Shown: piece after piece, positions 966 to 40,003 of the stretch
How the letters are laid out: the number at the start of each line of letters is the position of its first letter
Numbering within the stretch: the stretch's first letter is position 1
Source: Isurus oxyrinchus
Lineage: Eukaryota
Reading direction: 5' to 3'
DNA: 64,000 nt
Assembly (NCBI GenBank): GCA_026770705.1
Contig: JANJGN010000071.1
Span: forward strand, 2,480,001-2,544,000
Made by a program: the position numbers and the translations under genes
The notes under the pieces: generated by a model
What the model was told of the DNA's origin: nothing
Seen by the model: only the letters and a program-made list of their open reading frames with translations
Database searches by the model: none

Positions 966-1340
966 CAGAAACGTGAAGCTGGGTTTCAGGACGGTCGTTG
1001 TATCTATTCCTGTTGTCAAATTCTATTCTGAAATAATAATATCCTTCATCTCCCCATCTGATGTTGTTTATAAACAGGGAACAGTGACCATCTTTCAGGT
1101 CTCCAGACAGCTGAGTCCGATGGTGGAACCGTGGTAACTTGCGATTATGATCCTTGGAGTGAAAGGCTATAGACCATTCATTCCATGTTTCCCAATTCCT
1201 TCTCATATACCAGATTCCGACAGGTGATCTCGATACTAAATATGATGGATAACTGTAATGACATGGAATCTGTACACACAAACCTTCCTGCGCTGTCACC
1301 TCTCGTGGAGTGTCACCTTTCCACTCTTGTGGTAGTCCAG
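966..1340 (-). CDS. Siglec-like V-set Ig exon (V0), essential Arg present
   Basis: Acceptor ctctccctag, donor g|gtaat, 375 nt, phase 1-1. Peptide EGLCVQIPCHYSYP..GIWY..DGHCSLFI..YYYFRIE has the Siglec Cys pattern (B-E strand disulfide, inter-domain Cys, no F-strand Cys). Confidence 0.9.
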
Positions 1341-1731
1341 CTAGGGAGAGAAATATCAATATTTAACTCTGAATGTTTTGTCAATCCACTAGACTTGATA
1401 TCCACCCCCTCCTTCACTGGGGCACAGTGGCTGCAGTCTGGACTCACAATGAGTGCCCCAAGGTTTCACAACACAATGAAGAGTATCCTGGACACAGGAG
1501 TGGACAAGTTCATTCTACATTGGCTCATGGCCCTCAGGAACATGTTTAGTTAACCCAGTCTTCCACCCAACACAGTGTCTACAAGACGCACTAATTGAAG
1601 TGAGTTCACTGCTGATTTACAACGTAGGACAATGGATTAGGAGCCTTCAGAATTCCCCCATTATCACCATCATGAATCATGAATTGGCCTAGCTGTCCAA
1701 GATCCTCAGTGTCTAAGGCAGTGGTTCCTAT

Positions 1732-2658
1732 TGTGATGAAAGTATAATAATTTTCATAATATTTTATAGTATATTGTGAAGTAGGTTTATGGGGGTACGC
1801 ATGATGGGTCTGCATGTGATTTAAGTACATTTGGAGTTAATTAGATTGGAAGTTTAAAATGATCAAAAGGAGCTAGGTGCTTGACATGCTATTGAGGAAA
1901 CATGGATGCTGCTTAGCATGGAAGGTATGACGAGAATTTGCATTTTTCTATCAATGAAGGGGTTGTTGGATTTCAAAGGAATCTTAGCTTGTTTACAACT
2001 TGCCAGATAAGCAAGACTAAGGAATGTGTTTATTTTTCTCAAAGGCTCCTGACAATATTGGCACCACGAAAGAATTTGTTATGAGGAAGATACAGTTTTC
2101 AAAAACATTTGGAACAATAGAATTTTCATGTTACAAAGAGAGAAATATATATCTATCAGGGAGAATGAAAGGCTATGTGTCAGAATGCCATGTAAGATCT
2201 AACACGAGTGTGTGATATAGTCTTAATGAAACCTCTAGCATTTGTGCACAAGCCTGCTATCCAACAGAACTGAAGTTGGGGAAAAGCCACTTGGAATTCC
2301 TCTGTGCAGGGTATTGCTTTTATATTGTGTTAACTTGCTGAGTTTGTTTTAAATATAAAGCCTATTTTTGGACCGTTGCCTTAAAGGGAGTGCAACTGGG
2401 AGTCAGGTTAATTCGGAATTTTAAGAATTATTATAGTGGTAATTGTAGAGTTATGTATGTGCTTGAAATCTTTTATTTTGAGAGCAAGTATTTTAGTTTA
2501 ATTTTCAAATCTCTAAAGGTCTTGGTGTAATTATTGCTTCTGAATTCGGTGTACACATCCCATAATAAACACAAATTGCAAAATCATTATGATCATGTGA
2601 CCATCTTTCTCTCAGGGACTTGGTCTGCCTGGCACACATCACCTGCCAAGTGATAACA
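1732..2658. mobile_element. Probable solo LTR (TG...CA) in leader-V intron
   Basis: Begins tgtgatgaaa, ends tgataaca; non-coding; not present in the short paralogous intron at ~10.1-11.2k; mirrored at ~29470-30393. Confidence 0.4.
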
Positions 2659-2662
2659 CTGT

Positions 2663-3973
2663 TGTAATATGCCTTTCAGGGACAGCAGCATGACATCACT
2701 CGAGGAGAAGTGTGTCATGTGATTTTTAGGAACTGGGGATAGATTAAGGAAGTTCTATGTGTATTTGTGTGTGTTAGGCATAAGGTCTATCTTTAAGTTC
2801 AAGTTTAGTTTGATTTCTGAATTTGTGTGTTAGGAAAGTGGGAGACTTGAGTTTTGGTTTCATTTTTACAGAAGCCAGCAATCTAATGAGGTTTGGTGAC
2901 TCTTAAATGAAAGTCAAAACAAATACAAGGTGTAAGAAACTGTGCTGTTGCCTGGCAACAGTGATCCAGAGGGAAGGACCCACAGAGACCGAGAAAAACA
3001 GAAAAGTACTTTCAGTTCTGTTGAAAGGAGGTGCCAGGAGAAGCAGCAAAGGAGCGGGACAGATAGTCAGTCCCAAAGTAAAGAAGAAGCCAAAACTATC
3101 GAGTGGAACAGGAGAAAGGGCCCAAGAAAACCTTCTCGTCAAATCTGGACAAGGTCCTGTTAAGTGAAGTTAAGAGTGAGGAGCAGAGGAGGGATCCAAG
3201 CTAAAAGAGAAAAAGCAAAAGGACACAGGCCTAAAGCAAAATAGGCTTGTGAGAAGCCAGAAGATCCTAGGAGACACCACAGGTTGGTGACTCATTACTA
3301 CGGCCATGTGAAGCCATGGTGTTCCATTGACACGGCTGAGCATTGGAGAGACAGGGCGTGGAAGGAAGGCTGAATGCACGTGGCGATCCAGGGGGCAGGA
3401 ACATGGGAAGGAGAGTTTGAAATAGTGAAAGTGGACCCTTGTGGAAGGTGTCTGAGTGAAAGTGTCATGTTGGAGGAGATTCCAAAGAAAGCACTTGGCT
3501 CTCTTTGAGATTGGAAACCCTCATGTGAAAGACGCAGTTTCGTTAGACCAGTTGCCTCACAGTGTAACAATTGTCTGGAGTAGGTTGAGGAGGGACCCGG
3601 AGCATTTGTTTCACGTGGGTTCTGTCACTTGGTTTCAGAATGTGGTGTCCCTGACCACAGGTCATCTATTGGTTTACATCGACTGTGTACTTAGTGTGAA
3701 CATGAGAGTATAAGATAGTTATTGTAATTGTGTTATCCTTATGAATCTGTAAATGTATAGGTCTGGGTGAAGGAGGAATGTAATATAGTTTGTCTTTCCT
3801 AGTTTAATAAATGTTTTATTCTTTTGTTAGAAGCTCATCAGATGATTCCTGTGACTCTGTTCAGTAGCCGCACTCCACATTCCTAAATAAAAAATAAAAG
3901 TTAGGACCTATCAAGCTGAGTTCCACCCTGGGATCTGACTTGCCCAGTAGTAACATCAGCTGGGATGATAACA
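2663..3973. mobile_element. Probable solo LTR (TG...CA)
   Basis: Begins tgtaatatg, contains aataaa near 3806, ends gataaca; mirrored at ~28148-29465. Confidence 0.4.
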
Positions 3974-4099
3974 CCATCCAGTCCAAGTTTCACTTTGGCC
4001 TGTGAGCAGAACACAGCTCACACAGTTTGGCTGCAGGTGTCTCCCAGCTTTCTATCCTTGTATATCTGTTCTCATGTCCCTGTTCTAAATAACTGAACC

Positions 4100-7000
4100 C
4101 ACAATGTATTTACCCAATTCCGTATCAGTGGTTGGTGCCTTTATATCATTATAAAAACACAACATGGTGATCAGCGGTGGCCAAACATTCTGGCAGCAAG
4201 ATTCAGTACAGGTATGACGTGGTGAACAGCCTTAGATCGAGCTACATGACATGAGACGACCCTCGACGCTTTGGTCAGACCACAACAGAGACACAGCATC
4301 AGAGAGGGTTGAAATCGCAGTGTACTGACTGCTCAGGAAACCTTTGAAGACACAGTGACGGGAAAGAGCTCAAGTAAAGAGCTGGGGAGCAGACGGATCC
4401 CTCGTGGTGAGATTACAGCACACGGCCTGTAGGTCAGTGAGTGGGACAGTGTGTATCGCCAGGACCAGCAGCAGGTTAGCTCAGTCAGGGAAGGCGAGTG
4501 ACCAGGGTGTGGGCTGGATCGATAGTGAGCGAGGGAGAGTCAAACACACAAAAACCATTATAAAAATCAGCCCAGAGAAGTTAGTGATTATAACGGGCGG
4601 CTTCGAGATTGATGAACAGTAAATTGAATAAAAAACAAAGACTCCATTACTCCGTGGTGTGTTCCTGCCACAACCCGTCTTCGTGGGCGGAGCTTCGGAA
4701 AAGCGCACGAAAGGGGCTAAAGCGACACTCATCCCAGGTCCTGTAGGAGAAGGAAGGTCAAAGGAATATTGTCAGAATGTCCACGAAATTCCCCAGTTTG
4801 AACTGGGATGTAGCTGACTGACTATCTGAATTCAGAATGTTTAAACAGCGTACAGAGCTCTGGTTTCCTGATTCAGGTGTGACTGAACCAGACGAACAAG
4901 CCATAAAAATTCACCTCGCGATTGGGAATGAAGGTCTACACAGGCTGAACACATCAGGATTAACAGCAGAAGAGTGAAAGGATCCCCAATAGATATGGAC
5001 GACATTGGAAGACAGGTTCAGAATCAGGTGAAACTCCATATTCATCAACTAGAGTTTATGTCATTTCATCAGCCTACACAATCCATAGACCACTTCATCA
5101 GCCGATGTAGAGAAAAGGGTACGCACTGTGATTTCAAACACAGAGCCTGCAGACACAGTTGTTGAGTTGGTGATCGCATCCACTCCCATGGAAGCCTTCC
5201 AGAAAGATCTGCTAGATAAGACCAAAACCTATAGCATTGAAGAGCTACTCAAGGATGGACATAAATACGAAGTGATCCTCGCAGGTCAACGAAGCTTACA
5301 GGTCCTCAGTACAACATAAGTTGTTGACACACTCACTAGAACATCCAAACCTAGTGAGACGTGTGGAAGGTGTGGCCTTCTGCAGGCACCAAGGAAATGC
5401 CCAGCTTTCCACCAATCCTGCAAGGCTTGTGGCAGAAAGGGCCATTGACAGTGGCAGGGCACTAGAGCAAAGGCTGATGCAGCTACAAGGAGCCATGCGC
5501 TGATCCAAACAGACCCTACACAACGGGGAACCTTCAATCAATAAGAATGACCATCCGCTATCCCATCAGGAACATATACATGTGGTGACTGACAAACCAG
5601 GAAATGGCGATGATGTACATGGTGAGACGAGGAGCGGTGATCGATATTCCACCTCTCACACATATCCTGACGTGGCTTGCCAATAAATTGTGGATTGTTG
5701 TCCTTAATGATCTCTCTGGGCACATCAAATAAACTGAAAATGTCCCATAGTGGTGGGATTTTCTGGCCCCACCCACTGCCAGGATTGTCCGGTCCGGCCG
5801 AAAGCCAATGGATTTATATTTGTCCCAATCTCCCAAGGCAGGTCCTACCATGACTGGGCCGGAAAACCCCGGCCTAGAGTTTGTGCAACATTTGTGCTCA
5901 ACGTTTTGTGCAATTGTTGAACAATTTCACACCTTTTACACCATCAATCTCACGGAGAACAGATGCTGTCACATCACCCGCACTATTGGCCAAGATTCCA
6001 ATTATCTGCCCTGAGAAAGTTGCTACCTCTCCTTTATTGGCCAAGATTGACACAAGGGCAAGTGCCAACATTCCCCTCCCCCAGACCACCCCAGTAAATT
6101 TTCAAAGACATGTATCCAAGGACATGGAAGTCCATGGGGAAACCTACTGCTGTGTACAACACTTTACCAACTCCATGTGCGCAATACATAGTCCTGGGGT
6201 GCAAGTACAATCAATCCTCCTGGGTGTCACAGATGTTCTACATCGTGGAGACTAAAGGCAGAGCAATTGCAAGTCTACCGGCATGCAGTGACCTCACACT
6301 AGTGACAATCCATGGAATCTGTCAGAACTGACATGGGTCAACCTCAGAAACTACCCCATCAACTCAGTTCATGGACATAACATTGAAATATGCAGAAAGT
6401 TTCAACAGTATTTGCAGTTTCAAGGGAGCTGCAACATTACACCTGCAGGAGAATGCAAGTCTGTCAATTGATCCAGTACATTTAGCACAACAGAAATGCC
6501 AGCATCTACAAGAGGGGACAGTGAAAAATTCTACAGGAACTGTGGAAGTATCATTGAAAGGGTGGCCTGATTCAACTTGACGTCATCGGGATAAGCGAGG
6601 CATCTCCCAGGGAGTCATTTTTAATGGCAGGCATCGCATCATACCAGAACCTTTGTGATGATATATTCTTCAACAACTTCATCCTTCACACATGGGCACA
6701 GATCAGACAAGGAGACTCACAAGAGATACAGTCCCTGGCCGGGTATAAACAATGACCTTGAAGTCATAGTAGGGAAGTTCGAGGCTTGTCAAGAGGATGA
6801 GCCAAGTCAACACAAAGAACCACTGATTCCACAGGAAATTCCTGCCCATTCTTAGTCCAAAATCACATCTGAATCCTTTCATGTCCATGTCACTGACTTC
6901 ATCATCATCGTCGACAGCTTTACTAGATATCCCGTTATTCAAAAATAGCACAACACACCGAGCACAACTGCTGCTTACACTCTAAGCACTATTTTCAGTT

Positions 7001-8050
7001 TATTTGGTGAGCCTAGGGACATGATTACAGATAATCTGCAATATCAATCACACTACTTCTTCTCCTCATTACCCCAGATCTAACAGCCTAGCTGAATGAA
7101 TGATTCACACAGTGAAATCCCTAATTCTCAAATGTAGACAGACCAAGCAAGATCCACACATTGCAATGTTACATCTGAGATCGACACCTACAACTGCAAC
7201 TTTGTTAAATTCATTCATGGGATGTGGGAGTCACTGGTCAGGCCAGGATTTATTACCCATCCCTAATGTAAGAGTCAACCACATTGACGTGGAGTCTGGA
7301 GTCACATGTCGGCCAGACAATTTTGTTCCCTAAATGGCACTGGTGAACCAGGTGGGATTTCCAACAATGGTTTTGTGGTCATCACTAGACTTTGAATTTC
7401 ATCTTTTTATTAAATTCAAATTCCATCATCTATTATGGTCGGATTTGAACCCATATTCTCAGGACATTACCCTGGGTGTCTGAATTACTCATCTAGCAAC
7501 AATACCACTACACCATCACCTCACCTTATTCCATCACTGACAGAGATCATGTTTGGTGGGCCAGTAGTGACCAATTTCGCTACTCTTACCCATTCTACTC
7601 TCTCAGAAACCAGAGGGCAACTTTTAAAACTACAAGAGAAGATAAGGAATGTTCATGATAAAAATGGAGATGCAGAGTTGCCAAGTTTACAGTTGGGACA
7701 AGTTCACATCCAGGTTCCCACAGAAGGTTCATGACCACCAGCCGAGGTGACAAGGATTTGTTCAGAACCAAGGGCCTATGGAGTCAAACACACAAGGGCA
7801 CAGCGGTGAGGTGGAACCGAGGATAAATCAGATCCATTCCCGCTCCTATTCCATCGAGGAGAAGATCCCACATGAAATCAGGAACAACATCCAAGGGTGA
7901 CAATCCCACAGATCACTGTGAGCAGTTAAAGACACCTCCAGACAAGGTAACCAGCACAAGATCTGGGTGGACCAGAAGGTTAAATCCACACTTTAGAGAG
8001 TCAAATATTCAACAGTTCCATGCACTTATGTAACTGTCAATAAATATGAA
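4100..8050 (+). mobile_element. Degenerate Gypsy/Ty3 LTR retrotransposon (gag-protease-integrase remnants)
   Basis: Gag MSTKFPSLN..EFRMFKQR, zinc knuckles CGRCG..CPAFHQSCKACGRKGH, protease-like KIDTRASAN, integrase pieces WPGINNDLE and HYPRSNSLAE. Many stops and deletions. Boundaries approximate. Confidence 0.8.
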
Positions 8051-9048
8051 CATGATATGAGAAACCGCTTGTTCCCTGTCCTTCTCAAAGATCCATTCCT
8101 GCAGCGGGAGCCTGAAGAGTTACTGATAAGAGATTTAATTTATCGGATTGTAGAATGATCCAGAACTGAAGGAAGCCATTTGGCCCATCGAGCCTGTGCT
8201 GGGCCTTTGAAAGATCTGTCCAATTAGTCCCACTCTCACCTCTGCTCTCTCCCCCACAGCCCTGCAAAATGTCCCCTTCAAGTATTTATCTAGTTCCTCT
8301 TCTGAAAGTTCCTGTTGAATCTGCTTCCACCGCCCTTTCAGGCAGTGAGTCAATGGTCTCTCTCTGAGCTGCAAAGTGATAAGTTTCAATGAAATATAAA
8401 CTCTGCAGCAGATCAGAAACAATCATGATAACTCAGAATATTTGACAGTTTTACATACAGACAGCTTTGCCTCCCTTCTCTCTATCAGTTATCTTGCTAT
8501 CTTATCGAATTTTCTAGCATGGTGAGAATGGACAGGAAGTGTGACGCTGAACTGCCTGTCTAATCTAAGAGCTTCTGTGTTGTCTTCATGGGAAATTCTG
8601 ATGAAAATCAGCAAGAGAGAAAAATTTCAGGGCATTGATATCGGAGTGCTTGCATCAGGATAGACTTCATCCCCCAGTTTTTATCCCTGCTTCTCTATTC
8701 AGCCGATCGCTCCCCTGTCACTCGCTGACCTACACTGGCTCCCAGTCCAGCAAAGCCTCAATTTTCAAAATCTCTTCATTGATTCCTTATCCCTCCATCC
8801 TCCCTCTCTAATCCCTATCACTGTCACCTTCTCCAGCCCTTTATTTGAGGTCTCTGCTGTCCTGCAGTTCTGCTGTCAGACAGGGAGTCAGTGTATATCA
8901 GTGAGCACAGGGGTGATGGGTGAATGGGACTTGGTGTGAGTTTGTACACTGGCTCACTGCTGAATCGGTTCCCTATCAGAGCTCAATAAGAATGTTCTTT
9001 TACAAAGACTATTAGCCATACGTCTGTCTAAGCTGACGATGATATTAC

Positions 9049-9088
9049 CTTGGAGAAGTGACAGGAGGAAGTAAGATTTCCCGATCAT
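9049..9088 (-). CDS. Signal-peptide (leader) exon A, MIGKSYFLLSLLQ; exon spans 9049-9130
   Basis: Acceptor ctcttttctctttcag, ATG at 9088, donor caag|gtaat; phase 1, in frame with V0. Confidence 0.85.
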
Positions 9089-9538
9089 TGTCCTCTGCCA
9101 GATATTCCTTTAGCTTCTCACTCTCAAACTCTGAAAGAGAAAAGAGTTAATGAGACCTCACCTCTTGTCCGACAGCTCTCGAGAGATCAGAACTGCTTTT
9201 AGACAATGTCTTCACAGACTAATTTGGTTCTCTGTGGGATGATAGGTGCTCTGCAGAGAGTTAAAAAGCTGTAAAAAAATAAATCAATGAAGGACTTGCA
9301 ATTATATAGCACCTTTCACCACCTCAGGGTGTCCCAAAGCTCATGTCTCCGCACTTCCCTCATCCCTTGAGCTAGAAAGATGTTCTGTACAACAGACTTG
9401 AGCCTCACTCCCAGATCTCAATTATCAGTAGAAATCTTTCAAAGGCATCAATCATTGGAATCTGTCTTTATAAAGTCACAACATCAACAAAGGACGGTGT
9501 TGGTGGTGGAAGAGAATTCCAATCGTTCCGTTACTTAC

Positions 9539-9680
9539 CCAGGACCTGTCCGACTGCTCGTCTGGGGAGGAACTGCCCACACGCTCTGCTTGGGCTGAAT
9601 GACCGCTTCCTGTGCTGCTCCCTCTGTGTGTTTAATTAGAAAGGGTGCATGTGTCACTTTGAGACAAAATGAGGAAGTTG
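9539..9680 (-). promoter_or_regulatory. Promoter and non-coding exon 1, copy A
   Basis: Donor tgg|gtaagt ending at 9539; AT-rich box 9631-9639; PU.1/ETS motif aaatgaggaagt 9667-9678; module is conserved in four copies. Confidence 0.6.
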
Positions 9681-9889
9681 GATCAAAGTGACAGAGCAGC
9701 TCATGTTTTGAGATGTTGGTGAATTGTTAACCCTTTGTGTCCTGACCCTGTGGTGATATTTCTGCTCACAGGTGGACAGTCATTGACCAGGAATTTCTCC
9801 TGTGGGTCAGTGGGTTTCACAGCCAAATTCAGGGGGTCAGAACTTTGTGGGGTTCAAGACCCCATTCAGGGGACGTCTGCCCCACAGAG

Positions 9890-10115
9890 TAGACTGAAAC
9901 TCCCCAGTGTCAGTACTGAGCAAGCTCTGCACTGTCGGATGGTCATTACTGAGCAAGTGTTGCACTATTGTAAGGTCAGTACTGAGGGAGATCTCCACTG
10001 TTTGAGAGTCAGTACTGAGGGAGTGCTGCACTGTCAGAGGGACATTAATCAGGGAGTGCTGCAATGTAGGAGGATCAGTACTGAGGGAGTGCTGCACTGT
10101 TGGAGGGTCAGTATT
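9890..10115. repeat. 33-bp minisatellite (gagggagtgctgcactgtc.gagggtcagtact)
   Basis: Direct reading of degenerate tandem units. Confidence 0.85.
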
Positions 10116-10271
10116 AAGGTGCTGATTTACAAGACAGGACAATGGATTAGGAGCCCTCAGAACTCCCCCCATTATCACCGTCATGAATCACTAATTAGCC
10201 TAACATTCCTGTCTGCTCTTCAACACAGCTGATTGGCTAATCTGATTCAATCTGATTGGTGCACTTTGTAT

Positions 10272-10455
10272 GTTCATTGTCGAAGGAATCTCTTTGGATC
10301 CTCATTGTCGGAGGAATCTCTTTGGATCCTCATTGTCTGAGGAATCTCTTTGGATCCTCATTGTCTAAGGATTCTTTTTGGATCCTCATTCTTTAAGGAA
10401 TCTCTTTGGATCCTCATTGTCTAAGGAATCTCTTTGGATCCTCATTGTCTAAGGG
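10272..10455. repeat. 28-bp minisatellite (ggaatctctttggatcctcattgtctaa), about 6 copies
   Basis: Direct reading. Confidence 0.9.
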
Positions 10456-11239
10456 ATTATTTCTGATCCAAACCCCATATTGTTGTATTGTTGATTCCGA
10501 TGCAGCATTGTAGACTGACTTGTCCCCAAGCTCAGCACTGACCCTTCTCCAGCAGACCCTGTGAAACACACTAACAAAGCGCCTCTATCCTGAGCTCTGC
10601 ATGTGTCAAGAGAAAGACAAATATGCAAACTGAATATTGACATCTTTACACACGGACAGCTTTACCTTCCTTCTCTCTTTCAGTTATCTTGCTCCCTTAT
10701 TGAAGTATCTAGCAAGGTGAGAATGAACAGGAAGTGTGACACTGAATAGCCTGTCTATTCTAGGAGCTGCTGTGTTGTCTTCATGGGAAATTCTGAATAA
10801 AATCAGGAAAAGACACAAATTTCATTCCTTTGCTATCGGAGTCCAAGCATCAGGATAGACTTCATCCCCCAGTATTTATCACTGTTTCTCGACTCGACAC
10901 CTCACACCCTCTGCCACTCGCTGACCTGCACTGGCTCCCAGTCCAGCAGAGCCTCGAGTTTAAGACTCTCATCCTCAATTTCCATTCCCTCCATTCCTCT
11001 TCTCCAGTCACTTTCTCCTCCAACCATGCAAACCTCAAAGTCCTCTGGTCTCCTCCAATTCTGCTGTCAGACAGGGAGTCAGTGTATATCAGTGAGCACA
11101 GGGGTGATGGGTGAATGGGACTTGGTGTGAGATTGTACACTGGCTCACTGCTGAATCTGTTCCCAATCACAGCTCAATAAGAATTATGTTTTACAAAGAT
11201 GATTAGCCATAAATCTGTCCGAGCTGACGATGATATTAC

Positions 11240-11279
11240 CTTGGAGAAGTGACAGGAGGAAGTAAGATTTCCTGATCAT
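11240..11279 (-). CDS. Leader exon B, MIRKSYFLLSLLQ; exon spans 11240-11312; no V exon of its own
   Basis: Paralog of 9049-9088 with intact acceptor (ctttcacag) and donor (caag|gtaat). Confidence 0.75.
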
Positions 11280-12435: not shown

Positions 12436-12436
12436 T

Positions 12437-28020: not shown

Positions 28021-30797
28021 GGGTTCAGTTATTTAGAATGGGGACATGAGAACAGATATACAAGGATAGAAAGCTGGGAGACACCTGCAGCCAAACTGTG
28101 TGAGCTGTGTTCTGCTCACAGGCCAAAGTGAAACTTGGACTGGATGGTGTTATCATCCCAGCTGATGTTACTACTGGGCAAGTCAGATCCCAGGGTGGAA
28201 CTCAGCTTGATAGGTCCTAACTTTTATTTTTTATTTAGGAATGTGGAGTGCTGCTACTGAACAGAGTCACAGGAATCATCTGATGACCTTCTAACAAAAG
28301 AATAAAACATTTATTAAACTAGGAAAGACAAACTATATTACATTACTCCTTCACCCAGACCTATACCTTTACAGATTCATAAGTAGAATACAAGTTACAA
28401 TAACTATCTTATACTCTCATGTTCACACTAAGTACACAGTTCATGCAAACCAATAGACGACCTGGTGTCAGGGACACCACATTCTGTAACCAAGTGATAG
28501 ACCCCAATTGGAACAAATGCTATGGGTTTCAGCTCAACTGACTCCAGACACTTGTTTCACCATGAGGCAACTGGTCTTACAAAACTGTATCTTTCACATG
28601 AGAGTTTCCAATCTCTACTCGTCAAGTGCTCTCTTTGGAATCTTCTCCAACATGACACTTTCACTCAGAGACCTTCCACAAGGGTCCACTTCCACGATTT
28701 CAAACTCTCCTTCCCATGTTCCTGCCCCCTGGATCGCCACATGCATTCAGCCTTCCTTCTACGCGTTGTCTCTCCAATGCTCAGTCATGCCAATGGAACA
28801 CCATGGCTTCACATGGTCATAGTAAGAAGACATCAACATTTAGCTGTCTCCTATGATCTTCTGGCTTCTAATCAGCCTTTTTTGCTTTAGGTCTGTGTCC
28901 TTTTGCTTTTTCTCTTTTAGCTTGGATCCCTCCTCTGCTCCTCAATCTTATCTCGACTTAACAGGACCTTTTTCAGATTCCTGATCTTCTTTGGAGTAGA
29001 AGGTCTTCTTGGCTCTTTCTCCTGTTCCACTCGATAGTTTTGGCTTCTTCTTTACTTTGGGACTGACTATCTGTCCCGCTCCTTTGCTGCTTCTCCTGGC
29101 AACTCCTTTCAACCAAACTGAAAGCACATTTCTGTTTTTCTCTGTCTCTATGGGTCCATCCCTCTGGATCACTGTTGCTTAGCAATAGCACAGTTTCTTA
29201 CACCTTGTGTTTGTTTTGACTTTCCTTCAAGAGACATCAAACCCCATTAGATTGCTAAACGAAAATGAAACCAAAACTGAAGTTTCACCCTTTCTTAACA
29301 CACAAATACAGAAATCAAACTAAACTTGAACTTAAACATATACCTTATCCCTAACACACACAAATACACATAGAACTTACTTAAGCTATACCCAATTCCT
29401 AAAATCACATGACACACTTCCCCTCGAGTGATGTCATGCTGCTGTCCCTGAAAGGCATATTACAACAGTGTTATCACTTGGCAGGTGATGTGTGCCAGGC
29501 AGACCAAGTCCCTGAGAGAAAGATGGTCACATGATCATAATGATTTTGCAATTTGTATTTATTATGAGATGTGTGCACTGAATTCAGAAGCAATAATTAC
29601 ATAAAGACCTTTAGCGATTTGAAAATTAAATTAAAATACTTGCTCTCAAAATAAATGATTTGAAGCACATACATAACTCTACAATTACCACTATAATAAT
29701 TCTTAAAATTCTGAATTAAACTGACTCCCAGTTACACTCCCTTTAAGGCAACGGTCCAAAAATAGACTTTATATTTAAAACAAACCCAGCAAGTTAACAC
29801 AATATAAAAGCAATACCCTGCACAGAGGAATTCCAAGTGGCTTTTCCCCAACTTCAGTTCTGTTGGATAGCAGGCTTGTGCACAAATGCTAGAGGTTTCA
29901 TTAAGACTATATCACACACTCGTGTTAGATCTTACATGGCATTCTGACACATAGCCTTTCATTCTCCCTGATAGATATATATTTCTCTCTTTGTAACATG
30001 AAAATTCTATTGTTCCATATGTTTTTGAAACTGTATCTTCCACATAACAAACTCTTTCGTGGTGCCCATATTGCCAGGAGCCTTTGAGAAAAATAAACAC
30101 ATTCCTTAGTCTTGCTTATCTGGCTAGTTGTAAACAAGCTAAGATTCCTTTGAAATCCAACAACCCCTTCATTGATAGAAAAATGCAAATTCTCGTCATA
30201 CCTTCCATGCTAAGCAGCATCCATGTTTCCTCAATAGCATGTCAAGCACCTAGCTCCTTTTGATCATTTTAAACTTCCAATCTAATTAACTCCAAATGTA
30301 CTTAAATCACATGCAGACCCATCATGCGTACCCCCATAAACCTACTTCACAATATACTATAAAATATTATGAAAATTATTATACTTACATCACAATAGGA
30401 ACCACTGCCTTAGACACTGAGGATCTAGGACAGCTAGGCCAATTCATGATTCATGATGGTGATAATGGGGGAATTCTGAAGGCTCCTAATCCATTGTCCT
30501 ACGTTGTAAATCAGCAGTGAACTCACTTCAATTAGTGTGTCTTGTAGACACTGTGTTGGGTGGCAGACTGACTTCACTAAATAGGTACCTGAGGGTCATG
30601 AGCCAATGTAGAATGAACTTGTCCACTCCTGTGTCCGGAATTCTCTTCAATCTGTTGTGAAACCTTGGGGCATTCATTGTGTGACCTGTGGATTATCCAG
30701 ACTGCAGCCTGTGTGCCCCAGTGATGGAGGGGGTGGATATTGAGTCTAGTGGATTGAGAAAACATTCAGAGTTAAATATTGATATTTCTCTCCCTAG

Positions 30798-31172
30798 TTG
30801 GACTATCACAAGTGTGGAAAGGTGACACTCCAGGAGAGGTGACAGCGCACGAAGGTTCGTGTGTACAGATTCCATGTAATTACAGTTATCCATCATATTT
30901 AGTAGCGAGATCACCAGTCGGAATCTGGTATATGAGAAGGAATTGGGAAAAATGGAATGAACGGTCTATAGCCTTTCACTCCAAGGATCATAATCGCGAG
31001 TTACCACAGTTCCACCATCGGACCCAGCTGTCTGGAGACCTGAAAGATGGCGACTGTTCCCTGATTATAAACAACATCAGACGGGAAGATGCAGGATATT
31101 ATTTATTCAGCCTAGAATTTGACAACAGGAATAGATACAACGACCGTCCTGAAACCCAGCTTCACGTTTCTG
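30798..31172 (+). CDS. Siglec-like V-set exon V1, essential Arg replaced by Ser (YYLFSLE)
   Basis: Acceptor ctctccctag, donor g|gtaagt, 375 nt open, phase 1-1, Siglec Cys pattern. Confidence 0.9.
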
Positions 31173-31419
31173 GTAAGTGCTGTGTTATAATTACTCAACA
31201 ATTCACATCCAACACTCAATGGGAAATAATAGTGTTTGATTTGCTTGTTTTTTGGCCGTGTTAACCAGCGCCACTATTTTTAATGATTTGTCTATTTCTG
31301 CTCCCAGATCCATAAGCTTATTGTGTGTGATTGAATCCACATCATAGCTGTAACATAAACCGAGCTGAGGGGTGATGACACCTCCCCCCTGAGTGAAGTA
31401 TCTCCTCCCCACTACACCT

Positions 31420-33180
31420 TCCACCCCTCACACTGTCCGTGTAAACCCCCGTCCCATCTCCAGCCTCTCTTTCCCCTCCAAAGTCCTGCAACCTGTTTCC
31501 ATCTCCCGAATCTGTTCCCATCTTTCCCGGAACTCCATGTTTGAATCCCTCCAATCAGGTTCCCACCCCAGCCACTGTGCTGAAACAGCTCTTATCAAGG
31601 TCACAAATGGCATCCTGTGTGACTGTGACAAAGGTCAACTTTCCCTCCTCGTCCTTCTCGATCTGTCTGCAGCCTTTGACACGCTCGACCACACCATCCT
31701 CCTCCAACACCTCTCCACTGTCGTCCAGCTGGGTGGGACTGCTCTCCCCTGGCTCCATTCTTATCCATCTCATCGTAGCCAGAGAATCACTTGCAATGGC
31801 TTTGCAGCATCATCTGAACAGTGTTGGTTTTCACCTGTCCACTGAGGATCCCCAGCTCTACCTCACCACCACCTCTCTCGACTCCTCCACTGCTGCTAAA
31901 TTATCAGGCTGCTTATCCGACATCCAGTACTGGATGGGCAGAAATTCCCTCCAATTAAATATTGGAAAGACTGAAGCCATTGTCTTCATTCCCCGCTCCA
32001 AACTCTGTTCCCTCGCTACCAACTCCATTCCTCTCCCTGGCAGCTCTCTGAGATTGAAGCCAATCTGTTCACAGCTTTGTTGTCCCATTTGATCCTGAGA
32101 TGAGCTTCCGGCCTCCTATCTGCGCCCTCACTAACACCGTCTATTTCCACCTCCGTAACATCGCACGACGTCACCCTGTCTCAGCTCATCTGCTGCTGAA
32201 ACCCTCATCCGCGCCTTCATTACCTCCAGTCTCGACTGTTCCAACACACGCTCTACACTCCATAAACTTGAGGCCATCCAAAACTGCTGACCACGTCCTT
32301 ACTCACACCAAGTCCCGTTCCCTTATCACCCGCTCTGCTCGATGACAGAGACTGGCTCCTGGTCAAGCAAAATGTCAACGTCCAAATTTTCATCTTTGTT
32401 TCCTCACTATCCCTGTAATCTTCTCGTCCTCCTCCAGTACCTACAACCATCCCATTCTCTGTAACCTCTTCAAGCCTCTACCGCTTCCCTATATCTGTAA
32501 ATTCATCCTGCCCAACAAACCTACCAATCTCTGCAACCTCCTCCAGCCACAACAAACCTCCCTATTTCTGTAACTTCCTCCTGCCCCTAAAAGCTTCCCT
32601 ATCTCTGTAGCCTGCTCCAGTCCCGACAACTTTCCCTGCCCCTGTAACCTGCCCCAGTCACTACAACCCTCCCGACCTCTGCAAACTCCTCCAGACTCTA
32701 CACTCTCCCAATCTCTCTTAACTTTTCCAGCCCCTACAAACCTCCCTATCGCTATAACTCATCCAATCACTACAAACCTCGCTATCTCTGTAACCTCCTC
32801 CAGCCCCTACAACCCTCCCTATCTCTGTAACCTCCTCCAGACCCACCAACCTTCAGAGGTCTCTGCGCTCCTCCAATTCCAGCCTCTTGACCATCCCCCG
32901 ATCTCAACACTCTAACATCGGTGGCCATGCCTTCAGCTGCCTGGGGACCGAGCTCCGTAATACCCTCCCTTAAGCCCTCTCCATCCCTCACACTCACTCT
33001 CTCTCTCTCACTAACCATTTCATCCCTCTTTTAAGTTTCTCCATAACACCGATCCCTTCTGGTCAGCTGTCGCTAATATCTCCACATGTGTCTGCGTGAC
33101 ATACTTTGTTTTATGACGCTCCTGTGTAGCACCTTGGGGTGATTTGTCATGTTAAAGTTGTTGTGAAAATATAAGTTGTT
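31420..33180 (+). mobile_element. L2-clade LINE 3' part with embedded 37-bp minisatellite (32410-32850)
   Basis: RT motifs LLDLSAAFDT, LNIGKTE and FHLRNIAR, followed by L2-type 3' sequence. Confidence 0.8.
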
Positions 33181-33299
33181 GCCCTTTGACCCTCGACCCC
33201 AGATTGAGTCTTATTTTTGAGGGAATGTACAACCTGCTTAGATTTCTGACCAAAGTGTCATTTGATTATTTTTATTGAGCGAATGCCAAGCCCCGATAC

Positions 33300-33665
33300 C
33301 GAGCGAGAGCCTCCTCATTTGCTGAGTTTAAGGTGATGAGTCAGCCCCTTAGTCCGTAGAGGGGATTCTCCTCGGTAATGTACAGCCTTGTTTGTGTCTC
33401 TCCACAAGCGCATGAGGGATTTGTACAGAGGCTGCAGCGCTGGAGGGGGTCTGCACAGGGGTCCTGGCCTGTCCTGAGCTGGTTTTAGCAAGGACCACTC
33501 TGGCCTTGGCAGCTGAAAGCCAGCCATTGGACAGACAGGGCCTGTCACAAGGAGCCTGTTAGTCACTCCCCCCCGTGTCTCCTGTGCTCGGATCCAGACC
33601 ATGTTGGCTGGTGGATCTGGCTCAGGAAGGGTCCTCCCCATGGGACCCCCAGATGGAAGGTGGGT
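33300..33665 (-). mobile_element. Non-LTR retrotransposon C-terminal fragment (second copy ~35610-35970)
   Basis: Frameshifted GFQLPRPEWSLL..QLRTGQ..CACGETQT..I resembles the C-terminal zinc-knuckle region of RTE-X/I-like LINEs; clade uncertain. Confidence 0.5.
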
Positions 33666-33719
33666 CGAGCGGGTCAGTCACTTGCATGTTTATTCTGCAG
33701 TTTTAATATTTTAAGAAGG

Positions 33720-34455
33720 TAAGAATGTAGGAACATAAGAAATAGGGACAGGAGCAGGCCATTCGGCCCCTCGAGCCTGCCCTCGCTGATCTGGTTGTGG
33801 CCTTAACTCCATTTTCTTGCCTGTCCCCCAAACCCTTGACTCCCTTGTCGATCAAAAACCTGCCTCACTCAGCCTTGAGTCTATTCAATGGCCCAGCCTC
33901 CACTGCTCTCTGGGGAAGAGAATTCCACAGGCTAGCGCCCCTCTGAGAGAGGAAATTCCTCCTCATCTCAGTCTTAAATGGGAGAGTCCTCATTCCGAAA
34001 CTGTGCTCCCTGGTTCTAGATTCCCCCACGAGGGGGAAACATCCTCCCAGCATCCACCCTGTCAAGCCCCCTCGGAATTGGATATGTTTCAATAAGGTCA
34101 CCCCTCATTCTTCTAAACTCCAATGGATACAGGCCCAACCTGCTCAACATTTCCTCACAGGACAAACCCTTTAGTCCCAGGAATCAGCCCAGTGAAGCTT
34201 CTCTGAACTGCCTGTACACAATGATCCTGTTACAATCTCACTAACGCCCTGTGCAGCTGTTGCAAGACTTCCCTCCTTTTATACTCCATCCCTTTGCAAT
34301 AAAGGCCAACATTCCACTTGCCTTCCTCATTCCGTGGTGTTCCTGAATGCTGACTTTCTGTGATTCATGTACAAGGACACCCAGATCCCTCTGTACTGCA
34401 TTCTGCAGCCTGTCTCCATTTAAATAATATCCTGTTTTTCTATTCTTCCTGCCAA
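33720..34455 (-). mobile_element. CR1-clade LINE 3' fragment (second copy ~36030-36765)
   Basis: QRDLGVLVHESQK..KASGMLAFI and RNFLSQRGASLWNSLPQRAVEA. Confidence 0.85.
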
Positions 34456-34576
34456 AATAATTTGTTGCCATTCTCCTCAGTATTGACCATCCCCCCAATT
34501 CAGCCTCATCTGTAAATTATGAGTCTAGTGGATCCACAAACCATCCAGAGATAAATATTGAGATTTCTCTCCCCAG

Positions 34577-34945
34577 TTGGACTGTCACAAGAGTGGAAAG
34601 GTGACACTCCACGAGAGGTGACAGCGCAGGAAGGTTCGTGTGTACAGATTCCATGTCATTACAGTTATCCATCGTGTCTGGAAAACCAACCGCGAGGTGG
34701 ACTCTGGTTTAATAATGAGAAACAGATTCCCTGGGCTCCCATTGCCTTTCACTCCAAGGATCACAGTCACGAGTTACCACGGTTCCACCATCGGACCCGG
34801 CTGTCTGGAGACCTGAAAGATGGCGACTGTTCCCTGATTATAAACAACATCACATGGGAAGATGCAGGACCTTATTTTTTCAGAATAGAATTTGACAATG
34901 GTCCGAGCCATAACTATTACCCTGTAACCCAGGTTCACGTTTCTG
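34577..34945 (+). CDS. Siglec-like V-set exon V2, Arg present (PYFFRIE)
   Basis: Acceptor ctctccccag, donor g|gtaagt, 369 nt open, phase 1-1. Confidence 0.9.
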
Positions 34946-36883
34946 GTAAGTGCTGTGTTATAATTACTCAACAATTCACATTCAACACTCAATGGGAAAT
35001 AACACAAACTGTGACGTTTACATATTAACACAAAACACAGGTTATTATAACACACTGTCTGATTCTCAATAACCTGGTGATAGCTTCCAGTTCAGTCCTA
35101 AAGCAACCTCTAATACTCACTTTAATATCAATGATTAAATGTGTTGACTGTGTCTATCAATGTTATCAGTTTATCCACTCCCATCAATCTCTCAAATCCT
35201 GTCTTGAAGTCTGACATATCGACAGAAGAAAGATTTACATTTCTACAGCGCCTTTCACCACCCTAGACTTCCCACCCTAAACCTCTCCCTCTCCCTCTTC
35301 CTCTCCCTCTCTCTCTCTCTCTCTCTGTCTCTTTCTCTCTGTCTCTCCATAACACCGACCTCTTCTGGTCAGCTGTCGCTAATATCTCCACATGTGTCTG
35401 GGTGACATACTTTGTTTTATGACGCTCCTGTGTAGCACCTTGAGGTGATTTGTCATGTTAAAGTTGTTGTGAAAATATAAGTTGTTGCCCTTTGACTCTC
35501 GACCCCAGATCGAGTCTTATTTTTGAGGGAATGTACAACCTCCTTAGATTTCTGACCAAAATGTCATTTGATTATTTTTATTGAGCGAATGCCAAGCCCC
35601 GATACCGAGCGAGAGCCTCCTCATTTGCTGAGTTTAGGGTGATGAGTCAGCACCTTAGTCTGTAGAGGGGATTCTCCTCGGTAATGAGCAGCCTTGTTTG
35701 TGTCTCTCCACAAGCGCATGAGGGGTTTGTACAGAGGCTGCAGCGCTGGAGGGGGTCTGCACAGGGGTCCTGGCCTGTCCTGAGCCGGTTTTAGCAAGGA
35801 CAACTCTGGCCTTGGCAGCTGAAAGCCAGCCATTGGACAGACGGGGCCTGTCACAAGGAGCCTGTTAGTCACTCCCCCCCCGTGTCTCCTGTGCTCGGAT
35901 CCAGACCATGTTGGCTGGTGGATCTGGCTCAGGAAGGGTCCTCCCCATGGGACCCCCAGATGGAAGGTGGGTCGAGCGGGTCAGTCACTTGCATGTTTAT
36001 TCTGCAGCTTTAATATTTTAAGAAGGTAAGAATGTAGGAACATAAGAAATAGGGACAGGAGCAGGCCATTCGGCCCCTCGAGCCTGCTCTCACTGATCTG
36101 GTTGTGGCCTTAACTCCATTTTCCTGCCTGTCCCCCAAACCCTTGACTCTCTTGTCGATCAAAAACCTGCCTCACTCAGCCTTGAGTCTATTCAATGGCC
36201 CAGCCTCCACTGCTCTCTGGGGAAGAGAATTCCACAGGCTAGCGCCCCTCTGAGAGAGGAAATTCCTCCTCATCTCAGTCTTAAATGGGAGAGCCCTCAT
36301 TCTGAAACTGTGCTCCCTGGTTCTAGATTCCCCCACGAGGGGGAAACATCCTCCCAGCATCCACCCTGTCAAGCCCCCTCGGAATCGGATATGTTTCAAT
36401 AAGGTCACCCCTCATTCTTCTAAACTCCAATGGATACAGGCCCAACCTGCTCAACATTTCCTCACAGGACAAACCCTTTAATCCCAGGAATCAGCCCAGT
36501 GAAGCTTCTCTGAACTGCCTGTACACAATTATCCTGTTACAATCTCACTAACGCCCTGTGTAGCTGTTGCAAGACTTCCCTCCTTTTATACTCCATCCCT
36601 TTGCAATAAAGGCCAACATTCCACTTGCCTTCCTCATTCCGTGTTGTTCCTGAATGCTGACTTTCTGTGATTCATGTACCAGGACACCCAGATCCCTCTG
36701 TACTGCATACTGCAGCCTGTCACCATTTAAATTATATCCTGTTTTTCTATTCTTCCTGACAATATAATTTGTTGCCATTCTCCTCAGTATTGACCATCCC
36801 CCCAATTCAGCCTCATCTGTAAATATCGGGTTCAGTGGATCCACAAACCATTCAGAGTTAAATATTGAGATTTCTCTCCCCAG

Positions 36884-37249
36884 CTGAACCCTCACAAGAG
36901 TGGAAAGGTGACACTCCACGAGAGGTGACAGTGCAGGAAGGTTCGTGTGTACAGATTCCATGTCATTATAGTTATCCATCATGTCTGGAAAACCAACCGC
37001 GAGGTGGAGTCTGGCTTAATAATGAGGAATGGAGAACATCGTCTATAGCCTTTCACTCCAAGGATCACAGTCACGAGTTACCACGGTTCCACCATCGGAC
37101 CCGGCTGTCTGGAGACCTGAAAGATGGCGACTGTTCCCTGATTATAAACAACATCACATGGGAAGATGCAGGACCTTATTTTTTCAGAATAGAATTTGAC
37201 AATGGTCCGAGCCATAACTATTACCCTGTAACCCAGGTTCACGTTTCTG
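36884..37249 (+). CDS. Siglec-like V-set exon V3, Arg present (PYFFRIE)
   Basis: Acceptor ctctccccag, donor g|gtaagt, 366 nt open, phase 1-1. Confidence 0.9.
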
Positions 37250-37977
37250 GTAAGTGCTGTGTTATAATTACTCAACAATTCACATACAACACTCAATGGG
37301 AAACAACACAAACTGTGACGTTTACATATTAACACAAAACACAGGTTATTATAACACACTGTCTGATTCTCAATAACCTGGTGATAGCTTCCAGTTCACT
37401 CCTAAAGCAACCTCTAATACTCACTTTAATATCAATGATTAAATGTATTGACTGTGTCCATCAATGTTATCAGGTTATCCACTCCCATCGATCTCTCTAA
37501 TCCTGTCTCGAAGTCTGACTTAGCGACAGAAGAAAGATTCACAATTCTGTAGCACTTTTCACCACCTCAGCATGGACCAAATCACTTCACAGCCAATGAG
37601 CTGATTCCTGAATTGTAGTTACTATTGTAATGTGGGAAACACAGCAACCAATTTGTGCACAGCAAGCTCCCACAAATTGCAAAGTAAAAAATGGCCTAGA
37701 TCGCTGAGGGACTGATGGGTTAGTGCACTCCAAACTCTGGTCTGCTCCACCACCCTCACCCACTATTATCAGTTCAAGTGTCTCGGAGTGAACGTGTATT
37801 AAGCTGAGAGACAGAAACACCAAAGTCTCAAAGCAGGAAATTCTCTCCTAATCATTGTAACCTCTCAGATCTGATATCATCCTTGTAAAAGTGCTTTCTC
37901 TTGTGGGACTGTGATTTCTATTTGAACTGATACTTCACGTTATATTTCTCTAAAAGGATCCATTCTCTGTCTGTTAG

Positions 37978-38274
37978 ATTTCACAGATAAACCCATGATA
38001 TTCCCTGCTGAAATTATTGCAGGAAAGCGTGTGGATGTAAGCTGCACCTTCAACACAACGTGCAATGGAACAGCAGCACCTGTCTTAACCTGGGACACTC
38101 CCACTGACGTACCTGGATCAGTCTCAAACACTGTAACTCAGCATGGTGTCACTCTGACCTATACTTCTGTTCTGACCCTGATCCCATCACTCAAACACCA
38201 CGGACACACTCTCAGCTGCAGAGTGAGATATCCATCTGTTTCATCGGAGCGGACCCTCGTACTAACTGTGCAAG
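37978..38274 (+). CDS. Siglec domain-2 C2-set exon DFTDKPMIFPAEIIAGKRVDVSCTFNTTCNGTAAPVLTW...LSCRVRYP...LVLTVQ
   Basis: Acceptor ctgtctgttag, donor caag|gtaaga, 297 nt, phase 1-1; extra Cys (TTCNG) for the V-C2 inter-domain bond typical of Siglecs. Confidence 0.9.
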
Positions 38275-38599
38275 GTAAGAACGGACACCCTTCATTCTAC
38301 ATCAGCACTCCCTCAGCGCTGACCCTCTGACAGTGCAGCCCGTTCTCAGTGTCCACATTCTCATGCCTCTCAAAGTGCTTCACAGTCGATAGAAGTTAAC
38401 TGATCTTTATTTGATTGTTGCTGAATGAAGAGACAAGCTGTCTAAACTTTGCATCTCACACACATTATTTTCCATGGCAACACCTCCTCCAATCAGAGAC
38501 CACTTGCTGATTAACCAGCACTCTCTTCCCTTTAAATATAAATTGTTGTTCACTTTCTGTTGGTAAACCTGCAATCTGTCTTGTTGAGTCCGGTCCTGA

Positions 38600-38749
38600 C
38601 ATCTGAATATCACAATGAACAGAACAAGTTCCAACAATGAGCTGTGGTTGGTGATTCCTCACGTTACATCCAGGGACACTGGAGACTATCAGTGTGCTCA
38701 GAGAATGAACATGGAGCAGTGGAGGGGTTCATAACCATCACTGTGGAAC
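38600..38749 (+). pseudogene. Broken third Ig exon (3' half only, frameshifted)
   Basis: HLNITMNRTSSNNELWLVIPHVTSRDTGDYQCA, 1-nt shift at ~38699, then ENEHGAVEGFITITVE with donor c|gttagt. 5' half and acceptor are absent. Confidence 0.75.
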
Positions 38750-39863
38750 GTTAGTTAAGACAAACTTCAACATCTCTCTCAGATTGAGACACTACAAAAA
38801 CACACATAAATATCCAGCCTTAAACAGACACCTGCAGACACACAATCCCACATCTATGAGCACACACAAAGGCACACTCACAAACAAACACACTAGCACA
38901 TACTCCCCTGTGGATTACCTGACCTCCCTCAGTGCTGCACCGGAGAGTTGACCTGGATTCTGGGATTTGTGTTCCCTTTCATATTTATGGAAGAATATGG
39001 AAATTGCAAAGTCTATTACAGACACTCAGATGCACAGAGATACTCACAGATACTCTCTGCCTCTCCAACTCTCTATCCTACTTTAAGAACCTTCCTGAAA
39101 TCTAACTCTTTGACCAGTCACCTGTCCCAATTCCTCCTTACGTGATTTTGTGTGAAATTTTGTTTGAGTATCTGAGAGTAAGAGGGAAGTGGAGAGGTTT
39201 AGGAAGGGAATTCCTGTTGGTGAAAAGCTTACATCAAGTTCTCAGCTTTCCAGTGCCCATTTTTCACATGATGTCCATGTTCATAATGGGGATTGCCTAT
39301 GTAAACATCACGCTGTAGTTACACTCTCCCACCAGTGGTAGCACGGTAACACTTAACCCTTGCATCTCCAAGCTTTTCAAGCAATTTCACTTCCTAATTT
39401 GCTACTATTCACCTTAACCAGTCCCTGTGGGAGCGAGTTCCATATTCTCCCCTCTCTCTGGGTAAAGATTGGAACTGTTTATTAAGCGGGGGGTGTAAGT
39501 CCGTGTGGGAGTCCATCCCGATACTGCCCGATTCGCACACACGTCCGAGATGGATTTCCACCCTGCACTAAACGTTTCCAGAATTTTCTACAGCACAATC
39601 CTGTACACAGCGATGGAGAGAAACATTGGACAGGGAGTCCAACAGCACAATGATCCATTCTCACCAATGTTCCACGCTAAGGGGAAAGTTCCGATTGTCC
39701 ACTCTTAGAGTGTTTACAATGAAAACATTCATTCCACATTGAATTCCAGTGGATGGGTCAATATTACAGCAAATGTTGCAGTGATATGAAGCTTGATTGT
39801 TCAGCCAGAGTGAGAGATTGAAAGCGGAGAGTCAGTGATGATTTCTTTCTGTGTGTTCTCTAG

Positions 39864-40003
39864 ACAGTGGAGGAGAGATTCTGCACGTGATCCTGATCCT
39901 GGGAATACGAGCTGTGATATTCCTTGTGGCTGTGGTTATCACTATCGCTGGAGTCTGTGTCTGGGAGAGACAAACAGTGAAAGGAAGTCGACAGCCTGTT
40001 TGA
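39864..40003 (+). CDS. Terminal transmembrane exon SGGEILHVILILGIRAVIFLVAVVITIAGVCVWERQTVKGSRQPV* with intramembrane Arg
   Basis: Acceptor tttctttctgtgtgttctctag, phase 1, hydrophobic stretch with CGA (Arg) at 39908-39910, TGA at 40001-40003, aataaa at 40387. Confidence 0.8.

Follow-up and report, generated by a model that had tools for sequence, protein, structure and literature searches.

Whether one receptor family of sharks supplies both activating and inhibitory members, as mammalian paired Siglecs do, is the question raised by a 64,000-nucleotide stretch of the Isurus oxyrinchus genome (contig JANJGN010000071.1, positions 2,480,001 to 2,544,000; the whole stretch is called the window below). 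It is vertebrate DNA and holds a shark cluster of Siglec-like receptor exons adjoining a hepcidin gene. The first-pass annotation of this DNA had proposed a paired activating and inhibitory receptor system in a probable cartilaginous fish. The exons that it named are all real and lie where it had placed them, and exon identities point to a lamniform shark, which bears out the assignment to a Siglec-like family of cartilaginous fish. Probably, the window is part of a fast-evolving lamniform Siglec-like cluster, comprising one activating-type gene on the plus strand, the 5' end of a mirror gene on the minus strand, and an orphan relic of a tyrosine-bearing tail. By sequence comparison, the family is paired; a working pair at this locus is unproven.

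Relatives were sought by searching 1.84 billion cluster representatives with V3, one of the V exons, and by a word search with the protein P0011; 254 relatives were mapped onto the window, with exons searched one by one and splice sites read. These searches yielded over 100 RefSeq models, which come from sharks, rays, skates and sawfish and are named Siglec-5/7/8/10/11/12/13/14, CD33-like or MAG-like. The closest relatives belong to the great white shark, at 87-98% identity per exon, and the basking shark. None of the relatives was near-identical in protein across a long exon, and a protein-collection search with V0 and the C2 exon returned matches from other species only.

Membership in the Siglec family is indicated by several features. 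The exons V0 to V3 match Pfam V-set and Ig_CD22, as well as the solved V domains of Siglec-5, -8, -10, CD33, MAG and sialoadhesin at E values of 1e-11 to 1e-13; Siglec-5 is the best structural-database match for V0 and V3, and, as regards a CD33-related grouping, the scores against all six are almost equal. In Siglecs, an arginine of strand F binds the carboxylate of sialic acid. This residue of the conserved F-R-x-E motif is present in V0, V2 and V3, whose Y(Y/F)FRIE aligns with YFFRVE of solved Siglec-5, and absent from V1, which reads FSLE. The cysteine pattern, sought as QEGxCVxxPC...(N/D)CSL in the V domain with an extra cysteine pair at the start of C2, is likewise found at the sequence level, V3 reading QEGSCVQIPCHYSYP...GDCSLIINN and C2 reading VDVSCTFNTTCNGT...LTW. 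A C2-set domain follows the V domains, and its exon matches domain 2 of the MAG and CD33 structures. On these sequence grounds, we infer that the family in the window binds sialic acid.

The four V exons are closely related and diversified, as had been described. The dN/dS ratio (nonsynonymous to synonymous substitution rates) of 1.7 between V0 and V1 is not significant, with only 22 differences, and the nucleotide divergence of the exon, 6.0%, is the same as in its flanks. The main difference between V2 and V3 is in the C-C' loop (LWFNNEKQIPWAPIAF at 34700-34760 and VWLNNEEWRTSSIAF at 37000-37050, plus strand). Great white shark models have both types of loop (P0167 and P0253), so this difference has the look of an old patch that was exchanged, not of new mutations.

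The plus-strand exons run from a cyt1-like exon (copy M) through leader M, V1, V2, V3, C2 and a dead half of an immunoglobulin (Ig) exon to a terminal exon with an arginine in its transmembrane segment (Arg-TM exon). All intact Ig exons are in phase 1-1 with intact splice sites. The terminal exon, which the first-pass annotation had described as carrying an arginine in the membrane and no tyrosine, fits that description: the arginine stands within a strongly hydrophobic span of 29 residues, and the 12 residues that follow lack tyrosine. It lies in compatible phase after the C2 exon, as in orthologous great white shark models (TVQ/DSGGEIL), and shares 93.5% identity with the corresponding exon in three of them. 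Compared exon by exon with P0167, P0164 and P0189 of the great white shark, which splice C2 straight to the Arg exon, the gene reaches 93.5% in V2, 88.6% in V3, 92-97% in C2 and 93.5% in the Arg-TM exon. Nine Arg-TM models were recovered, covering lamniform, carcharhiniform and orectolobiform sharks, and the motif ILGIRA(V/G)IF is invariant in all of them. By every sequence criterion, then, the plus-strand gene is an activating-type Siglec-like receptor, and it is apparently complete.

Under the basic-residue adaptor rule for such receptors (PMC1440944), the membrane arginine would pair with the aspartate of an adaptor dimer bearing an ITAM (immunoreceptor tyrosine-based activation motif), such as DAP12 or FcR-gamma, and the cell would then be activated when a sialylated ligand is bound. 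The dead Ig half-exon would be skipped. Since this I-set remnant persists at 38600-38750, the gene is, judged by its exon remains, a descendant of a longer relative with extra Ig domains.

A search for leader copies found no second leader for V1, V2 and V3 elsewhere in the window, so these exons share leader M. Given one leader for three V exons, all in phase 1-1 with intact splice sites, it is possible, and we put it forward tentatively, that the gene makes a Siglec with two or three tandem V-set lectin domains on an activating Arg-TM anchor, of which V1 would be ligand-blind and V2 and V3, differing in the C-C' loop, competent. Strings of two to four such V domains are found in RefSeq models from several sharks and rays. 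To our knowledge, no Siglec with more than one V-set domain is known. If the reading is true, the tandem V domains, together with the recurring 85-nucleotide cyt1 exon spliced to leaders, would constitute a modular exon system that shuffles heads and tails.

The candidate inhibitory part of the locus lies in the 12-kb spacer between the two gene heads, where tail-type exons of the family occur only as cyt1, cyt2, a terminal exon and a second copy of the terminal exon. Both terminal exons read QKDEKDLEMKSNRGVNPDTDDDLYANC(D/E)FA(K/E)DSVYGNL followed by stop, each behind a pyrimidine tract and AG, and shark Siglec-like proteins match them at the C-terminus with E values of 1e-16 to 1e-21. Their membership in the family, previously assigned from their tandem position, is now supported by great white and basking shark models in which this tail follows Ig domains, a membrane exon, cyt1 and cyt2, and by RNA in which cyt1, cyt2 and tail are spliced in that order. 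The full tail occurs in P0245 of the great white shark and in P0159 and P0158 of the basking shark, built of a membrane exon (...EWKAGLLGAGICLSVGLSGFFIFKCVRK), cyt1 of 85 nucleotides, cyt2 of 105 nucleotides and the terminal exon; in intact relatives of other sharks, it stands behind V-C2-Ig-Ig and a membrane exon.

An immunoreceptor tyrosine-based inhibitory motif (ITIM) recruits SHP-1 or SHP-2. The tail tyrosines stand in VYENC, LYANC and SVYGNL, all three in the Grb2-type context Y-x-N, and this YxN tail class is conserved from cow sharks to stingrays. Only SVYGNL fits the ITIM pattern (I/V/L/S)-x-Y-x-x-(L/V/I), as quoted in PMC7226832, so that, as far as sequence pattern goes, the description of the tail as ITIM-bearing applies to this motif and not to VYENC and LYANC. 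Since all tail tyrosines are of the YxN type, a purely inhibitory role of the tail is an assumption.

What the tail lacks is a body. Upstream of it on the minus strand, the window holds no membrane or ectodomain exon except the leader and truncated exon of a divergent V domain, V5, at 57-58 kb; tblastn of the 254 family proteins found no minus-strand family exon between 18.4 kb and 56.7 kb, and sensitive searches with the membrane exon of P0245 gave nothing credible in the window. A candidate relic of a membrane exon at 29288-29350 (minus strand), mirrored at about 2790-2850 (plus strand), was rejected as T/G-rich low-complexity sequence with stop codons. The earlier caveat that these exons have neither ectodomain nor transmembrane exon is thus upheld for the strand upstream, with the amendment that cyt1 and cyt2 partner exons were found upstream of tail copy 1. 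The acceptor AG of copies A, B and M is replaced by AT at cyt1 copy C. Because the body is missing and this acceptor is lost, the tail exons are most likely an orphan 3' fragment, which would be a relic of the inverted and tandem duplications that built the locus. A comparison of the two terminal exons gave no signal of constraint, as they differ by 2.6% against 2.1% in the adjacent 3' untranslated region (UTR).

RNA evidence comes from four runs of one sample, which contain 17-58% of the sampled words of 34500-40100; their type was guessed as RNA, a guess supported by spliced joints and by the contrast between exons and introns. Contigs from these runs were compared with window positions 9901-15900. 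They carry the GT-AG joints 15543/15031 (cyt1 to cyt2) and 14927/13885 (cyt2 to tail), in three runs each, and cover the tail exon with about 1 kb of 3' UTR; the tail type is therefore spliced and expressed in Isurus oxyrinchus. The source locus of these contigs is uncertain, because at 13446-13802 their letters match tail copy 2 at 7 of the 11 listed places and neither copy at the other 4, because the joint-bearing contigs differ by 1-3% from the window copies, and because one contig joins a membrane exon ending in FKCVRK to cyt1 through a junction whose DNA is absent from the window. Window-identical contigs exist at low depth and unspliced, for example at 15378-15508 and at 15618-15835, the latter across the 5' edge of cyt1 copy C. 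Further joints link cyt1-type exons and leader exons in both orders, as in P0163, P0162 and P0251, which are read-through models from the basking shark and the great white shark.

At the level of the family, the two halves of a pair are present: a short tail with Arg-TM and a tyrosine tail with an ITIM consensus are carried on ectodomains that are 80-97% identical. A second tyrosine-tail class, LLYAxINF...TEYAQIRF, which is closer to the mammalian arrangement of an ITIM and an ITIM-like motif, occurs in relatives and has no copy in the window; across the three tail classes, C2 domains share 90-97% identity. An intact candidate inhibitory member with a near-identical ectodomain exists in related sharks and was not found in the window, so that of the paired-receptor proposal the part concerning the family is supported and the part concerning the window is not.

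The architecture of the locus (Table 1) includes duplications identified by self-BLAST. Leaders A and M lie in opposite arms of an inverted duplication and leader B in the spacer between, in agreement with the head-to-head leader modules reported earlier. The left arm may extend further left, because window base 1 is where its alignment ends. Read downward, the minus strand carries, in order, tail copy 2, cyt1 copy C, cyt2, tail copy 1, cyt1 copy B, leader B, cyt1 copy A, leader A and V0, where the gene runs off the left edge, leaving its own tail outside the window. Because the inverted repeat is cut by the window edge, the V0 gene may mirror the activating gene. Tandem copies at 32975-35262 and 35287-37566, 95.5% identical, carry V2 and V3, and another pair at 11969-13996 and 16520-18539, 91% identical, carries the two tail exons. 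Nearly all duplicated pieces are edged by minisatellites.

The 85-nucleotide cyt1 exon occurs four times in the window, with copies differing at 0-3 of 85 nucleotides; constraint on it is not clear, since the downstream flank differs at 2-7 of 120. Copies A, B and M lie 410-420 bp upstream of a leader and have intact splice sites. In RNA contigs, joints run from cyt1 to leader and from leader to cyt1, so that neighbouring genes seem to reuse a coding tail exon as a 5' exon. In addition, a minisatellite with units of about 43 bp at 11937-12431, 15750-16977 and 55150-55392 holds a 22-nucleotide piece that is 90-95% like cyt1 positions 11-32, and it seems to have grown out of the cyt1 exon. The leader exons contain two start codons in different frames, giving MKYLGVDN... 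and MI(G/R)KSYFLLSLLQ (11299-11301 and 11269-11271, minus strand, in leader B; also in leaders A and M). Both starts are in one frame in catshark models (MKYLEGTMIGKSYF...); in Isurus oxyrinchus, and likewise in the models of the great white shark, an overlapping upstream frame starts at the first ATG.

Several observations weigh against the reading of one activating-type gene, a mirror 5' end and a relic tail. The tail exons keep open frames, the splice sites of cyt2 and the terminal exon are intact, and polyadenylation signals follow; the splicing of the plus-strand gene in Isurus oxyrinchus is predicted from homology; the joint-bearing contigs, being within 1-3% of the window, could be alleles from another individual, in which case the fragment would be expressed; P0245 couples a V5-type domain to this tail type, and 41 kb upstream of the tail the same strand carries the leader of V5 and its partial exon; and the duplication breakpoints fall in minisatellites, where misassembly can occur. 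If the tail were the true 3' end of an expressed gene, whose body would be the V5 gene 41 kb upstream or exons missing from the assembly, the locus would hold a working activating and inhibitory pair. Strand and order (V5 leader, V5, then cyt1, cyt2 and tail) fit such a gene, as do the matches of P0245 to V5 (91%), cyt2 (97%) and tail (87%), the intact open frames and the abundance of spliced tail RNA in run X2. Yet V5 stops short after DSDVY and lacks a donor, that strand holds no C2, Ig or membrane exon, the hepcidin gene and a whole opposite-strand gene intervene, cyt1 copy C has lost its acceptor, and the RNA letters mismatch the window copies, which together render this arrangement rather unlikely.

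It is also conceivable, if improbable, that the tail exons are used for something other than a receptor, with cyt1 serving as a first or 5' exon and with a non-coding product or a small soluble peptide with tyrosine motifs arising from a short transcript of cyt1, cyt2 and tail or from read-through into the V0 gene. The intact cyt1 copies 410-420 bp upstream of all three leaders speak for such use, together with the RNA joints in both orders, the models P0163, P0162 and P0251, which run membrane exon, cyt1, cyt1', leader and V together, and a 99.5% window-identical contig that crosses the 5' edge of cyt1 copy C unspliced. However, no transcript start was seen, contigs being unable to show starts, and the cyt1-leader joint has unmatched letters between its sides, suggesting a paralogue as the source. 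An error of assembly, by which the inverted arrangement or the spacer was misjoined at minisatellites and the real tail follows a complete gene, is highly improbable. Both spacer ends (about 9900-10124 and 21914-22236) are indeed copies of the same 33-bp minisatellite, and further minisatellites lie beside every tail exon, but the arms differ by 5.4% along 10 kb, like real paralogues and not like a collapsed duplicate, V0 and V1 differ at 18 residues, and great white and basking shark models show the same cyt1-leader-V modules. The reading of an activating-type gene beside a mirror 5' end and an orphan tail relic is thus preferred.

Table 1. Features of the window, with the best identity of each exon to a relative where given; P numbers denote relatives.
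Feature	Position	Strand	Best identity	Remarks
Inverted duplication, left arm	1-10124			contains V0, leader A and cyt1 copy A; self-BLAST against 32137-22014, 94.6% identity
V0, Siglec-type V-set exon	966-1340	-		375 nt, phase 1-1; Pfam V-set 3e-13, Ig_CD22 9e-9; Siglec-5 structure 9.5e-14, FRIE aligned to FRVE; Arg kept (YYYFRIEF)
Leader exon A, for V0	9049-9128	-		MIGKSYFLLSLLQ, phase-1 donor; 100% to first 13 residues of P0237; 95% to leader M
cyt1-like exon copy A	9539-9623	-		85 nt; about 410 bp upstream of leader A; AG and GT intact
Leader exon B	11240-11312	-		MIRKSYFLLSLLQ; own acceptor; joined to cyt1-type exons in RNA contigs (joints 11301/11723, 11807/11240)
cyt1-like exon copy B	11723-11807	-		85 nt; exon sequence identical to copy C
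Terminal tail exon copy 1	13769-13885	-	87%	...DDLYANCDFAKDSVYGNL, stop; identity to P0245 tail; 3' UTR to about 12800; AATAAA at 12995 and 12827
cyt2 exon	14927-15031	-	97%	KRGEGKAGIKSNHRVDEYRGPVYENCERGWALRNQ, 105 nt; identity to P0245 residues 480-514; joints on both sides; splice sites read
cyt1 exon copy C	15543-15627	-		GSSTGRGHSAQAERVGSSSPGEQSDRSW; donor intact; acceptor AG changed to AT; joint 15543/15031
Terminal tail exon copy 2	18312-18428	-		3 nt and 2 residues different from copy 1; no cyt2 or cyt1 upstream
Inverted duplication, right arm	22014-32137			10.1 kb; self-BLAST
cyt1-like exon copy M	22494-22578	+		85 nt; upstream of leader M
Leader exon M	22990-23069	+		MIGKSYFLLSLLQ; sole leader for V1, V2 and V3
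V1	30798-31172	+		mirror copy of V0; 18/122 residues changed; canonical Arg lost (YYLFSLEF)
V2	34577-34945	+	93.5%	Arg kept (YFFRIEF); identity to second V domain of great white shark P0167
V3	36884-37249	+	88.6%	recent tandem copy of V2 (2.3-kb unit, 95.5% identical); different C-C' loop; Arg kept
C2-set exon	37978-38274	+	97-98%	297 nt, phase 1-1; Pfam C2-set_2 6.5e-9; extra cysteine pattern VSCTFNTTCNG; identity to great white shark P0160, P0255
Dead half of I-set Ig exon	38600-38750	+		first half gone, stop codon before, 1-nt frameshift
Arg-TM terminal exon	39864-40003	+	93.5%	(D)SGGEILHVILILGIRAVIFLVAVVITIAGVCVWERQTVKGSRQPV, stop; membrane helix with Arg and His, 12-residue tail; AATAAA at 40387
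V5, divergent truncated Siglec-type V exon	56771-57064	-	91%	identity to great white shark 'MAG-like' P0245 residues 14-111
V5 leader	57867-57923	-		divergent Siglec-type gene

Beyond the cluster proper, V5 breaks off after ...AEDSDVY, without a donor, where the long open reading frame 56230-56808 starts; this frame has no Pfam match and is taken for a retroelement gag-like sequence, and V5 is probably a dead 5' fragment. Fragments of a non-LTR (non-long-terminal-repeat) retroelement reverse transcriptase (Pfam RVT_1) lie at 314-745 (minus strand), in mirror position at about 31400-31830 (plus strand) and at 43786-44169 (minus strand), so placed that one stands directly downstream of each of V0 and V1 within the inverted repeat. 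The hepcidin gene occupies 47.4-51.8 kb among the Siglec-like genes, with its mature peptide exon at about 47460-47560 on the minus strand (RQKR/MSRQRHCRFCCNCCNWREPNETCGLCCRY, stop). Human hepcidin neighbours MAG and CD22, not the CD33 cluster, and the adjacency in the shark hints at old synteny.

Fish regularly have only Siglec-1, CD22, MAG and Siglec-15, without CD33-related Siglecs, according to a paper that did not consider sharks (PMC7226832), and a search of the literature on Siglecs and adaptors of sharks or cartilaginous fish found nothing specific. The window and the matching RefSeq models show a large Siglec-like family that duplicates rapidly in sharks and rays, and in it one Arg-in-membrane class and two tyrosine-tail classes on near-identical ectodomains follow the logic of mammalian paired Siglecs. 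Either this logic dates back to the base of jawed vertebrates or it arose independently. Automatic annotation already contains orthologues, and the pair is not demonstrated at this locus; what the window offers comparative immunologists is a concrete locus.

Among known systems, the great white shark models come closest. They show the same exon-for-exon build, with V-V-C2 and Arg-TM 88-97% identical and the same leader peptide, and P0245 has the same succession of membrane exon, cyt1, cyt2 and tail. Unlike them, the window has an extra tandem V exon (V3), the Arg-less V1 and tail exons without a gene body. The human genes SIGLEC11 and SIGLEC16 are likewise head-to-head, as are the 5' regions and V exons of the shark inverted duplication, at 94.6% identity. 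The human genes carry opposite tails, whereas the V0 tail of the shark lies outside the window and a tail fragment sits between the two heads. The comparison with SIGLEC11 and SIGLEC16 drawn by the first-pass annotation is thus unsupported within the window, as it needs the V0 tail, and the V0 gene may simply mirror the activating gene; if the inverted repeat spans the entire gene, as it may, both copies would be activating.

The tail of CD22 (Siglec-2) is similarly rich in tyrosine, mixing ITIM-consensus and Grb2-type Y-x-N motifs. The shark tail differs in comprising only about 100 residues, and the shark V domains match CD22 far worse (E values of 1e-3 to 1e-5) than Siglec-5, CD33, MAG and sialoadhesin (1e-11 to 1e-13). 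With respect to human SIGLEC5 and SIGLEC14, the shark tail bears YxN motifs and a C-terminal S-x-Y-x-x-L in place of an ITIM and an ITIM-like motif, and the shark locus has several V exons and no intact inhibitory partner seen in the window. The likeness, which carries no claim of orthology, lies in the common design: in the human pair, as in the shark family, V-set and C2 ectodomains are common to a receptor with tyrosine motifs and to a short-tailed partner with an arginine in the membrane.

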